Shown: positions 23,286-41,911, counted from the stretch's first letter. The stretch: 44,432 bases of DNA from Octopus bimaculoides (GCF_001194135.2 NC_068989.1:17563127-17607558), one strand, 5' to 3'. Made by a program: numbers and translations. The notes: generated by a model from the sequence alone, not told the origin.

Positions 23286-23461
23286 TTATTGTCCGATATT
23301 GCAGTTGGCTCTGTATGGCCAATCACAGACTTTCTTAACCTTGTTAAAGTGCAAGTTTCCAGGGCAATCCACTCTCTGTGCAATATTCCAGTCACACCGA
23401 TAAAAATGTCTGCAGCTTTGTGGGTCAGGGAAATGACCTGTTGATTCAGGACATTTGAAGC
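23286..23461 (-). CDS. Gene B terminal exon: chitin-binding type 2 (peritrophin-A / CBM14) domain and stop
   Basis: TTTTTTCCTTAG acceptor, phase 1. [57 protein letters not shown] has six Cys and the FPDPxxC, FYxC, CPxxLxFN and CDWP motifs. Confidence 0.9.
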
Positions 23462-26400
23462 CTAAGGAAAAAAAGTAAACAAAATTAATTTTTATTGCTA
23501 GTGTCAAATAAATGAATTTCGCATTTTAATTATATATATTTCATGAAGTAAACATTTATCGATGATCACATTTATGCAATTGATTAGACTCGCCACATGA
23601 GGTGTGTGTGTGCGTGTGTGTGCGTATGTGTGTGTATGTGTGTGTGTATGTGTGTGTGTATGTGCGTGCGTATATGTATCTATTTGTGTGTGCAATTGTG
23701 ATTGTGTGTATGCATGTGTCTCCTTGTCTTGCTACTGCATGATTGTTATACATGAGTACCACTTTCATACAAGCCGTATTATTCATTTCCTTTAAAAACT
23801 TGTCTGGCTATCAGGAAATATTATTTTACTTGGAGACAGGAGTGGGTTGGCAGCAAAAATGGTATTGAGCTGTAGAAAATGTGACAGATGCAAGGTCTTA
23901 TCTACCTGCCTGACCTATGCAAGCATGGAAAAGGGGATGTTAAAACAATAATGATGAATTGCTTTAACTGCTTTTGGAAACCCAAATCATTTCGTAAGAG
24001 AGACTGGTCCCTTTTTATCCCTTTAAAAACACAAACAATTGTACATAACAACTCAGCTTCATTACACACGGATGAAGCTTAATGATCAACACACACACAA
24101 ACACACGTACAAGTGTGTATTAATCAGAAAATAATGCATAATGGCTGTGTAAGTTCTATACACTAAAATGAGTATGAATACCATAACCACCACCACCACA
24201 AAAATAAACCAAATAAAATCATCTTGCTATCTTCGTCAACTCGTCATCTCAATTCATTTAAATTAGTGTTTCTTAACCAAACTCCGTCTATGGACCTTTT
24301 TCATTCCTATTTCATTCAGGTGGGCCCTGACAAACATTTGGTGTTTAAAAAATCCTATTATATTATTATCATTAAATGATATTAGGAATTATATAAAAAG
24401 ATTGTTAAAATGTTTTGTGCATGGTAGAAATATAACTGATTTATTGCACATAAATTTTAACAACAGAATCTTATCTCGACCCTCAAGGGTCATATAGACA
24501 GGTTGAGAATGATTGATGAAGATAAAGCAGGAGAAAGAGTTAAATCATCCTAGTCAGTGGTTAAAATATATTAGCATATTCACTGAACTGACTTGGGAAA
24601 TTTCAAAACGAATGTATATTTTGTCTTTTCTGTTTTTGTGTTTTAAAGAAAAAATATTAACTTGATCATTTTTGTGAACAGTATTTTGAAAGTGAAACCT
24701 TTTAGGCAAAAATATACTAGCTGTCAGTATCAGGAAAGTTGGTCAGAATGTTATATTTCTTTCATATTTAATCCCCACAATGTAAAATGATTACCCTCAG
24801 CAAGAAGCTATTAATCTAATCACTACATACATAAGTATCTGATGTATCTCTTACATTCGTTTTGCCACAATACATATTAACTCGAACCTACTTACATCTC
24901 TGTTCCGTATACTTAAGTATCTCGTGTTTGAATTTTCTGTTTTCCTCTTGATAGATTTACTCCAACAGAACTATCTGTTTGTTGAGTGCCCATCTTCAAA
25001 CTACTAACTTGAAATCATTTAAATACATTGAACTAACGACCCTCTATTTTCTCAGTTCTCAGGCAGTGAAGACGAGTGTTTTAAATAGATATTGGCAGTT
25101 TTTTACTAGCCTTATCAAGACATATAAAAATATACCTATGTGAACACATAATCATTAAGGTGGGGGTAGTCAGTTTGAAAAACGCCAAATGAAATTTTCA
25201 GAATAAATGTTAATTATTTGACCAAATCAAATAGGAAAAATGCATTTATTAACTGCTGACATTTAGTAATAAATTAAAGGTACAATACTTACTTCCTTGC
25301 TGGTCTGGTACTGCAAAAAAAATAATGTAAATCAAAAGTCATATTAGTTTCATTTATACACACATACGTTCGTACACACACAAATACATAACACACATCA
25401 TGTAAGTCTCAGAATTGGGAAACGTTTATCAACTAAGATTAATCTTGGATTAAGAAACAAAAATCCCTCCACTAATATTTAAAATTAAGAAAAAAGAACA
25501 AAAACAGTAAGGGAGAGAACTCCAATAGCTGCAAGTTCACTTCTGGTATTTGTTTTTGCATGCAGAATGCTTCCCTGATATATTTCCGTCAGTTGATTTA
25601 ATACAATTAACTTGGTATATCTGTTTATTGCATTTATGAGTTCTATTCTTATTCAAAGCAGCAAGACAATTTTAAAGTTCAATGGAGGCAAATTTTTCCA
25701 GCAATATTCAAATGAAAGATTTATACGTGCAATAAACAAAAGCGATTTGAATTAGTCGTTTTCAGAGGCTGGAAGAAGGTAATGACCGACTAAGCAGCCT
25801 GGTTTCGAGAACATCAGGAATTTTTCGAAATTTTAGAACTGTATAAGAAATTCATGTAAGAAATATAAATTTGGAATATTAAAATTGTTAAAGGTTTTAA
25901 AATTATTAAATGTATTATAATTCTGTGTAATAGTACTTTAGCTTTATATTAACTTCTTGACAAAATAGAAATAAGAAACAGTATATTCTAATCAATGTCC
26001 ATAAAGGCATAAATGACCTAAGTAAAGTGAAAAAAACTGTCGCTAGGAATCAAAATCAAAGCAGGGATCTCCGGTTCACAAGTGCAAATTATGTAACATT
26101 AAACAGCTATGCTTACCTTCACAATAGGTTCCTTTAAAGCCAGGTAGGCATCGGCAACGTAATTGGTTGGCATTTTGGATGCAGGTTCCTCCGTTAAGAC
26201 AAGGGCGAGACGGACAATACGGGTGTGGAATACGTTCAGTACAAATAGTGCCAGACCATCCATTAAGACAATTACAAGTGAAGCCATTTGGTACCGAGCT
26301 GCTACACCGGCCGTTATTTTGGCAAGGATTTGGGGTGCATGGATTGGTTTGAATGTCGCATGTCTGTCCAGTCCATCCTTGTCGACAATTACAAATAAAG

Positions 26401-41400: not shown

Positions 41401-41911
41401 TCCACTACAAAGACACACATGCGTCTAAATATGTATTATATGTATGAATATAAATATATGCATATATACACATATATGTAAATATATACACACATATATA
41501 CATATATATGCATACTCGTATGTGTGTGTGTATGTATGTATGTAGATATTACATATGTACGTATGTGTATGTATGTATATATATATATATTCATGCATAC
41601 ACATGCATGCAAGCTCATACAAACATACTTATACGCATAAAGATGTATGTAGACACACATGCGTCTAAATATGTATTATACAGTATCTGTGCGTGTGTGT
41701 GTGTGTGTGTGTGTGTGTGTGTGTGTGTGTGCGTGCGTGCGTGCGTGCGTACGTGCGTGTGTGTGTGTGTGCGTGTGTGTGTGTGTGTGTGTGTGTGTTT
41801 GCGCACGTGCGCGAGGGTGTTCGGTTTGCAAGGAATCCAAGACAGAATACTTACAGAAATTATTGTAGCAAGAAAAGCGCAGAGCAGGAATCTACCGGTT
41901 AATTGAAGCAT
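23286..41911 (-). CDS. Gene B (joined model, 10 exons, about 839 aa): secreted Delta/Serrate-like protein, SP - C2/MNNL - DSL - 15xEGF - chitin-binding type 2 domain, no TM
   Basis: Exons 41911-41855, 39878-39689, 35534-35452, 33367-33200, 32074-31930, 30624-30514, 29607-29488, 27568-26117, 25310-25293, 23461-23286. All have AG/GT boundaries and the phases chain 0,1,0,0,1,1,1,1,1 into one open frame of 2520 nt. The N gap at 27681-28252 could hide extra phase-1 EGF exons. Confidence 0.88.
25293..25310 (-). CDS. Gene B candidate 18-nt micro-exon 9 (linker VPDQQG)
   Basis: Minus strand reads TTTTTTTTGCAG|TACCAGACCAGCAAGGAA|GTAAGT with a CTAAT branch-like motif upstream. Phase 1->1 and frame-preserving. 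Confidence 0.65.
26117..27568 (-). CDS. Gene B exon 8: 1452-nt exon encoding 13 EGF repeats
   Basis: Lies inside ORF 26076..27587. CTTTCAG acceptor at 27569-27571, G|GTAAGC donor at 26116, phase 1->1. 13 six-cysteine modules of the CxNGGxC...CxCxxGFxGxxC type. Confidence 0.95.
26575..27245 (-). repeat. Coding tandem repeat: three copies of a 225-nt unit (two EGFs, 75 aa) inside exon 8
   Basis: CAAGTTCCTCCATTTTGACA recurs at 26641, 26866 and 27091, exactly 225 nt apart. Confidence 0.93.
29488..29607 (-). CDS. Gene B exon 7: EGF repeat 2, calcium-binding type
   Basis: 120 nt, phase 1->1, TCTTAG / G|GTAAGA. (G)[39 protein letters not shown] has the IDEC...CxDxxNxYxC cbEGF signature. Confidence 0.93.
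30514..30624 (-). CDS. Gene B exon 6: EGF repeat 1
   Basis: 111 nt, phase 1->1, TTTTTCAG / G|GTATTT. (A)[36 protein letters not shown]. Confidence 0.93.
31930..32074 (-). CDS. Gene B exon 5: DSL domain
   Basis: TTTCAG acceptor and G|GTACGT donor, 145 nt. [48 protein letters not shown] has the exact DSL cysteine spacing C-x8-C-x3-C-x11-C-x7-C-x8-C plus the YYG and CDxNGxKxC motifs. Confidence 0.92.
33200..33367 (-). CDS. Gene B exon 4: C-terminal part of C2/MNNL domain
   Basis: TTTTCAG acceptor and GTAAGT donor, 168 nt, phase 0->0. [56 protein letters not shown]; the end THLTYQIR parallels Jagged AHFEYQIR just before the DSL domain. Confidence 0.87.
35452..35534 (-). CDS. Gene B exon 3: middle of C2/MNNL domain
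   Basis: TTTTAG acceptor and CAG|GTAAGT donor, 83 nt, phase 1->0. (G)[27 protein letters not shown] contains the NPI motif of Delta C2 domains and bridges the phases of exons 2 and 4. Confidence 0.85.
37072..38255 (-). mobile_element. Penelope-like element remnant, copy B: GIY-YIG tail plus longer 3' region ending at (TA)n
   Basis: ORF 37809..38018 matches copy A ([38 protein letters not shown]); upstream VTTDQRTxIGLCEG. Contains a hammerhead-like motif about 600 nt downstream of the ORF. Confidence 0.72.
37164..37216 (-). ncRNA. Degenerate minimal type-I hammerhead ribozyme motif in the Penelope-like 3' region
   Basis: Minus strand: cagcgc CTGGTGA ACGTA-tttgtcttg-TACGT GAAAC TATTA GTA acgcgtg. 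Core is one mismatch from CTGANGA, stem II is perfect, stem III is near-palindromic, cleavage triplet GTA. Confidence 0.55.
39689..39878 (-). CDS. Gene B exon 2: N-terminal half of Notch-ligand C2/MNNL domain
   Basis: TTTACAG acceptor and GTAAGT donor, 190 nt. [63 protein letters not shown](G) follows the Delta pattern xKLxxFxNxxGxLxNGxC...CxTxxxVC...CxYGxxxTxVIG. Confidence 0.9.
41101..41405 (-). mobile_element. tRNA-derived SINE (tRNA-Arg-like head), gene B intron 1
   Basis: Minus strand GGCGCAATGGCCCAGTGGTTAGGGCAGCGGACTCGCGGTCATAGGATCGCGGTTTCGATTCCC has A box, TCG anticodon-like loop and B box, followed by a non-tRNA body. Confidence 0.8.
41855..41911 (-). CDS. Gene B exon 1: start codon and signal peptide ([19 protein letters not shown])
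   Basis: ATG at 41911, 19 codons, donor GTAAGT, phase 0. Joined to exon 2 it gives [29 protein letters not shown], a typical signal peptide. Conserved in paralogue A. Confidence 0.85.

Follow-up and report, generated by a model that had tools for sequence, protein, structure and literature searches.

Octopod DSL-domain proteins without a membrane anchor end in a peritrophin-type CBM_14 module

DSL proteins and the octopus locus

With few known exceptions, DSL proteins are Notch ligands bound to the membrane. DSL-1 of C. elegans, a diffusible ligand, has only one EGF and lacks a carbohydrate-binding domain. The gene described here encodes the protein XP_052826417.1 of Octopus bimaculoides and lies on the minus strand, from position 41911 to position 23286, of a stretch of 44,432 nucleotides (NC_068989.1:17563127-17607558 of GCF_001194135.2), which is referred to below as the window. 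The domain order of its product is signal peptide, C2/MNNL, DSL, 15 EGFs and CBM_14 (peritrophin-A/ChtBD2), the last followed directly by the stop codon. The gene belongs to an octopod tandem family in which the C2-DSL head was kept, the anchor in the membrane was lost together with the residues of canonical receptor binding, and a tail of the chitin-binding type was gained. The gene had been modelled before, and RefSeq and UniProt already list the sequences with generic names (fibropellin-1-like, jagged-1b-like, Delta-like protein); what is new is the DSL-family domain architecture.

The canonical Delta/Serrate/Jagged ligands (human JAG1, DLL1 and DLL4; Drosophila Delta and Serrate) have in common with the octopus protein a C2/MNNL domain that packs against a DSL domain of identical cysteine spacing, followed by tandem EGFs. 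Unlike these ligands the octopus protein has neither a transmembrane segment nor a cytoplasmic tail, its DSL face is replaced, the atypical EGF1-2 pair is absent, its C2 domain has four cysteines and no calcium aspartates, and it carries a C-terminal CBM_14 domain. It resembles C. elegans DSL-1 and its relatives in being a DSL-family protein without a membrane anchor (PMC3415683), and differs from DSL-1 in having 15 EGFs and a putative chitin anchor. A second comparison is offered by octovafibrin of O. bimaculoides (XP_014771937.1), a secreted, load-bearing egg-tether fibre with 29 EGFs between C-type lectins (PMC10336842). The two proteins come from the same species, are secreted or predicted to be so, consist of a long EGF array with a binding domain at either end and share the 'fibropellin' type of automatic label; the likeness is drawn from the EGF array and the layout, the ends being C-type lectins in octovafibrin and C2-DSL and CBM_14 here. 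The sea-urchin fibropellins, from which the RefSeq name is taken, are also secreted proteins with many EGFs, and these are flanked by N-terminal C1s/CUB-like and C-terminal avidin-like domains (PMC10336842). Unlike the fibropellins, the octopus protein gives no C1s/CUB-like or avidin-like match in Pfam, and the name reflects EGF similarity only. Finally, the CBM_14 matrix proteins of molluscs and arthropods (Pif/BMSP, LamG3-ChtBD2, squid chitin-binding beak proteins and peritrophins) are secreted and possess the same six-cysteine peritrophin-A module, which binds chitin in shell, beak, eggcase and gut, but there it is paired with VWA, laminin G or CBM_14 repeats and in none of them with a C2-DSL head.

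Gene model, domain order and occurrence

The gene was rebuilt from stop-free stretches and splice signals and corrected against annotated relatives. Its coding sequence of 2529 nt translates to a protein that is identical at every residue to RefSeq XP_052826417.1 (P0122, "fibropellin-1-like isoform X1", 842 aa). The ten exons are as follows:

41911-41855, minus strand: exon 1, start codon (ATG at 41911) and signal peptide, 19 residues; donor GTAAGT; KD19 hydrophobic peak of 2.14 at residue 9
39878-39689, minus strand: exon 2, first part of C2/MNNL; AG/GT borders, phase 0 to 1; identical to P0122 residues 20-83
35534-35452, minus strand: exon 3, middle of C2/MNNL, 27 residues; 286 nt from the gap at 34691-35166
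33367-33200, minus strand: exon 4, last part of C2/MNNL; the MNNL hidden Markov model (HMM) match of 34.7 bits spans exons 2-4
32074-31930, minus strand: exon 5, DSL with a divergent face (motif of 14 residues); Pfam DSL 41.7 bits; aligned to the JAG1, DLL4 and DLL1 chains
30624-30514, minus strand: exon 6, EGF 1, canonical, resembling EGF3 of Delta
29607-29488, minus strand: exon 7, EGF 2 (IDEC..., calcium-binding-like)
27577-26117, minus strand: exon 8, EGF 3-15 in a single exon
25310-25293, minus strand: exon 9, micro-exon of 18 nt encoding the linker VPDQQG, phase 1-1; AG/GT borders and a T-rich tract; the least certain exon
23461-23286, minus strand: exon 10, CBM_14 (peritrophin-A/ChtBD2) and stop codon; Pfam 51 bits; no in-frame ATG

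All internal exon borders follow AG...GT and the phases are consistent throughout. The window sequence is part of CM046609.1 in assembly GCA_001194135.2, gaps included; it has 36% G+C, is rich in microsatellites and contains ten runs of N. Five of the gaps fall within the gene, in intron 1, intron 2, intron 3 (two) and intron 7, and the coding sequence is uninterrupted, the shortest distance between a gap and an exon being 104 nt. Exon 2 is located on a small contig with a gap at either side and yet is exactly the exon of RefSeq isoform X1. For exon 3 an alternative at 35230-35167, which abuts the gap at 35166 and is phase-compatible, was rejected, as mapping of the RefSeq protein places the exon at 35534-35452. 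The linker encoded by exon 9 has a counterpart in P0002 and P0124 and none in P0005, P0006 and P0125. An extra cassette EGF exon could reside inside the intron-7 gap, where the paralog P0124 has an additional EGF.

Pfam matched the MNNL model well above its cut-off of 22.5 bits, the DSL model, and the EGF models 15 times. The CBM_14 match, obtained when the last exon was scanned alone, covers profile positions 1-53 of 53, and all six cysteines and the aromatic positions are present. The cysteine spacing of the DSL domain, C-x8-C-x3-C-x11-C-x7-C-x8-C, is that of JAG1, and the 107 cysteines of the protein are distributed as one in the signal peptide, four in C2, six in DSL, 90 in the 15 EGFs and six in CBM_14. 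A hydrophobicity scan across the 842 residues found no transmembrane segment or cytoplasmic tail beyond the signal peptide; the sole hydrophobic 19-mer, at residues 9-27, is that of the signal peptide, while the transmembrane segments of two Jagged controls gave peaks near residues 1070-1083. A preliminary description of the locus, made from the sequence alone, had proposed a phase-consistent frame of ten exons encoding these domains, with the exact DSL cysteine spacing, ChtBD2 directly before the stop and no hydrophobic anchor; each of these proposals stood, and the HMM searches that it called for matched both MNNL and DSL.

The head (residues 20-215) aligns over its full length with the solved chains of DLL4, JAG1, DLL1 and Drosophila Delta and Serrate (E about 1e-12). 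Similarly, phmmer aligns the CBM_14 tail with solved chitin-binding modules, i.e., the chitinase CBM14 6G9C (2.4e-11), tachycitin and the mite allergen Der p 23; its alignment with chitin-binding beak protein 3 of squid (7BWE) is weak (E 0.064). When hmmscan was run on full-length P0122, P0124 and P0002 neither CBM_14 nor MNNL was reported, though the isolated pieces score as given above, and the precomputed Pfam lists for long family members are without PF01607. This is probably why names such as 'fibropellin-1-like' were assigned. The present analysis provides a correction of the annotation, in that a routine full-length Pfam scan misses both CBM_14 and MNNL and the names 'fibropellin' and 'jagged-1b-like' are misleading.

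As the EGF and CBM_14 exons are all of phase 1-1, compatibility of phase is weak evidence that the CBM_14 exon belongs to the gene. It has therefore to be considered that the architecture is an artefact of annotation, the CBM_14 exon having been taken from another transcript, or the main isoform being held in the membrane by a segment encoded at another place, for example downstream or inside a gap. This is very improbable. Neither a start codon nor a signal peptide is encoded by the CBM_14 exon itself, which, lacking an in-frame ATG, cannot begin a separate gene, and the interval from exon 8 to exon 10 is free of gaps. The gene models are predictions, and the O. vulgaris model P0004 ends directly after the last EGF; against this, the upstream tandem copy shows the identical order of signal peptide, C2, DSL, EGFs and CBM_14, complete before the XP_052826417.1 gene starts, and the same terminal domain is found in the annotated O. 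sinensis proteins P0002, P0005 and P0006 and in one clean O. vulgaris model, P0125. The recurrence of the whole unit in the paralog, in O. sinensis and in O. vulgaris argues that the CBM_14 exon travels with the gene. The one candidate for an anchor exon is a transmembrane-like open reading frame (ORF) in intron 9 (24226-24089, minus strand; 23 residues), which can be reached in phase 1 from exon 8 or exon 9. It was rejected and judged to have arisen by chance: it is of low complexity, is preceded by a purine-rich pseudo-acceptor, is deleted and frameshifted in the paralog, and diverges at the rate of the surrounding intron.

The architecture is confined to octopods in the databases searched. 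An exhaustive HMMER search with the head against 1.84 billion representatives yielded five proteins below 1e-30, all from Octopus. The next match was a 93-residue fragment from Argonauta hians (54% identity), and the remaining matches, at 25-35% identity, were cnidarian, annelid, flatworm, nemertean and molluscan DSL proteins, mostly membrane-anchored and with no clear nearest group. A Pfam scan that covered 91 of the 147 representatives from the head search found CBM_14 in none of the 90 longest non-Octopus DSL proteins (0/90), the octopus control being positive, and an HMM built from the octopus tail likewise gave no match among the non-Octopus DSL proteins. In a literature search no paper was found in which chitin-binding domains are connected with Notch ligands or in which these accessions are cited, and none was relevant on octopus peritrophins. 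Surveys of the lophotrochozoan Notch pathway that cover both Octopus genomes make no mention of chitin, and one of them dropped matches with unexpected domain architecture (PMC8166818, PMC10970066). In agreement with the suspicion voiced in the preliminary description that this domain combination had not been described, the same architecture was met only in octopus relatives.

The C2-DSL head and its partner

The conserved face of the canonical DSL domain is the Notch-binding site and comprises JAG1 F199, R201, R203, D205 and F207 (PMC3415683), and the substitution F207A alone drops Notch-1 binding to background (PMC3888931). In XP_052826417.1 the residues aligned to these five positions are R, D, P, T and Q. 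A non-canonical DSL motif, mostly RC[DE]IPxxEQxRFxC, is present in 10/10 octopus family members examined; the canonical ligands listed nearly all have FCRPRDDxFGH instead. The major receptor interface is formed jointly by MNNL, DSL and EGF1-3 (PMC6202052). The two atypical EGFs (DOS-type EGF1-2) after the DSL domain are absent from the octopus protein: the DSL exon splices straight into a canonical EGF and, because intron 5 is gap-free, no exon encoding such a pair is hidden there. In agreement with this EGF_DL_JAG scored below its cut-off and away from the DSL domain, and JAG1-like_EGF2 was absent, each of the two being found in 20-22 of 91 other DSL proteins. The C2 domain has one cysteine pair fewer than canonical ligands (four cysteines versus six) and shorter loops, and the positions aligned to the calcium-binding D140 and D144 of JAG1 are not acidic; the calcium-binding C2 aspartates are needed for full Jagged-1 activity (PMC3888931). 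As judged by sequence, the protein retains the structural scaffold of a canonical Notch ligand without its defining functional features.

According to the preliminary description the protein could be a Notch ligand, or a decoy, fixed to chitin. The head would then bind octopus Notch, anchoring to chitin through CBM_14 would resist the pull or hold an antagonist in place, and the epithelium would sense its own cuticle. It is conceivable that this is so, as the C2-DSL module is intact by sequence and by predicted fold and the head is under constraint, as a secreted DSL ligand, DSL-1, is known in C. elegans (PMC3415683), and as immobilised ectodomains such as plate-bound Jagged-1 Fc can activate Notch (PMC3888931). 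The replacement of the residues of the DSL binding face, five of five and the F207 position among them, nevertheless disfavours this explanation, as do the loss of the atypical EGF1-2 pair from the major interface and of the C2 calcium ligands; a fast-evolving tandem expansion with a variable number of EGFs is moreover the pattern of a matrix protein and not of a core signalling ligand. A tethered ligand or decoy is on balance doubtful. A better fit is the other possibility raised in the preliminary description, a structural matrix protein into which the C2-DSL head was co-opted. What survives of that interpretation is the architecture and its apparent novelty, while the part concerning Notch is disfavoured by the sequence of the binding face.

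The explanation favoured here, to which a probability of about 55% is given, is that the protein is secreted and belongs to a chitin matrix, to which it is anchored, and that its remodelled C2-DSL head has a binding partner other than Notch. The CBM_14 end, for which we infer chitin binding by homology, would fix the protein to chitin, either that of the animal's own cuticle or matrix or other chitin that it meets. The 15 disulphide-bonded EGFs would make up a semi-rigid stalk, the length of which differs between paralogs, and the head, derived from a Notch ligand, would present a surface remodelled away from the canonical Notch-binding face. Since this face is remodelled the head most likely binds something else, be it a cell-surface protein, a matrix protein or a second copy of itself, and the protein may organise, cross-link or attach chitinous material instead of activating Notch. 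Between O. bimaculoides and O. sinensis the identity is 86% for C2, 84-88% for DSL and 79-82% for CBM_14, compared to 58-69% for the EGF stalk. The number of EGFs among family members ranges from 5 to 19. Within exon 8 a tandem repeat of 225 bp (x3; 26566-27227, minus strand) has two EGFs as its unit (Tandem Repeats Finder, 87% matches), and in O. sinensis the closest protein, P0002 with 1056 aa, has more copies of this unit, so that the length of the stalk varies. The better-conserved ends, the variable number of EGFs and the repeat together give the pattern of two binding ends with an adjustable spacer.

The family members are candidate components of the chitinous structures of cephalopods, i.e., sucker lining, beak, radula and gut cuticle. 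The family provides a clear case in which exon shuffling moves a signalling module into an extracellular-matrix setting, and may serve as a natural experiment on what the C2-DSL head is capable of other than Notch binding.

There are observations that weigh against the explanation favoured here. Conservation of the DSL domain among family members is strong, with 48/49 residues identical between tandem copies, which indicates that the head matters and is compatible with a contact with Notch that is non-canonical or has co-evolved. Departures from the vertebrate and fly consensus are also known in some accepted DSL ligands, those of C. elegans. The AlphaFold model of the head has a mean pLDDT (predicted local distance difference test) of 82.6 and a pTM (predicted template modelling score) of 0.75, and the top 24 Foldseek matches to it are all C2-DSL structures of Notch ligands (E 8e-15 to 1e-10, template modelling scores 0.62-0.73), with generic C2 domains ranking below; as the alignment given to AlphaFold included canonical ligands, which biases the model toward their fold, this result is supportive and not independent. 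Furthermore, all protein models compared are computational predictions. One may speculate, as a long shot, that the octopod proteins are Notch ligands or antagonists displayed on the animal's own chitinous cuticle, that the remodelled DSL face engages Notch or a Notch-like EGF receptor, and that cuticle-secreting epithelia in this way sense whether matrix is present, or how far it is under tension, by mechanotransduction of the Notch type. If the head does still engage Notch, this would be the first matrix-presented Notch ligand.

The matrix-protein explanation has also to be weighed against a soluble protein that recognises foreign chitin, such as that of crustacean prey cuticle in gut or saliva or that of fungal or parasite surfaces, with CBM_14 as the recognising end and the C2-DSL head as an effector or oligomerisation end. 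CBM_14 modules are known in chitinases, tachycitin and gut peritrophins, and the family consists of divergent tandem duplicates confined to one lineage, as is generally often the case for secreted immune and digestive proteins. Pfam, on the other hand, found no catalytic or known immune effector domain, and one CBM_14 module at the end of a long stalk of EGFs is closer in appearance to an anchor than to a multivalent lectin. Recognition of foreign chitin is for these reasons considered possible but unlikely, and anchoring in a chitinous matrix is preferred.

Tandem copies, repeats and neighbouring sequence

The gene is one of at least three copies arranged in tandem on the same strand. A complete upstream paralog with its own CBM_14 exon (L001 10001-26583) precedes it, and a downstream paralog follows, the 5' part of which falls within the window:

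4333-12625, minus strand: 5' part of the downstream paralog P0128 (RefSeq 'delta-like protein 1'), located by tblastn; exon 1 12625-12569, exon 2 7163-6936, exon 3 4422-4333

The RefSeq model of P0128 is a truncated protein of 184 aa without exon 4, whose exons 1-3 are those listed. A further paralog, XP_014781344-6, is found on the same chromosome.

In RefSeq isoforms X2 and X3 of the XP_052826417.1 gene, exon 2, or exons 2 and 3, are swapped for versions from the complete upstream paralog (L001 10001-13937), some 30 kb upstream and thus beyond the window; exons 1-2 or 1-3 are in this way borrowed from the paralog, the body of which is skipped. The equivalent of exon 4 was not located in this paralog and is probably in a gap, which would explain how the annotation pipeline probably came to chain the first exons of the paralog to the XP_052826417.1 gene. 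Isoforms X2 and X3 are chained, chimeric-looking models and are regarded as doubtful. The annotation of the cluster is also unreliable in O. vulgaris, where models P0127 and P0129 consist of frame-shifted translations of EGF/CBM_14 exons fused to the exons of the next paralog; these models still show the tandem arrangement in common with O. bimaculoides.

The DSL exons of the tandem copies (31930-32074 and L001 18653-18799) have no synonymous differences, in addition to the near identity of the encoded residues, while the products of the C2 and CBM_14 exons have diverged by 12-24% in amino acid sequence. A nearly identical DSL exon beside diverged C2 and CBM_14 exons suggests gene conversion. 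For the C2 and CBM_14 exons the non-synonymous divergence (dN) between the tandem copies is lower than the synonymous divergence (dS), a comparison that is qualitative only as the numbers are small; taken exon by exon the dN/dS values are noisy, with one EGF pair misaligned, a dS of about 0 for one exon and a value of 6.4 for another that arises from few changes.

Long (CA/TG)n and (TA)n microsatellites begin just past the donor of exon 1 (41640-41830), flank most of the gaps and give rise to pseudo-ORFs of the 'HTHTHT' and 'CVCVCV' type. They probably caused the assembly gaps in the window. Debris of retroelements is present on the plus strand: the segment 17840-18184 matches zf-RVT (38 bits), and 2161-2445 contains an ORF with weak likeness to an endonuclease. 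An ORF at 44117-44347 on the plus strand, which is without a Pfam match, resembles the tail of ORF2 of a long interspersed nuclear element (LINE).

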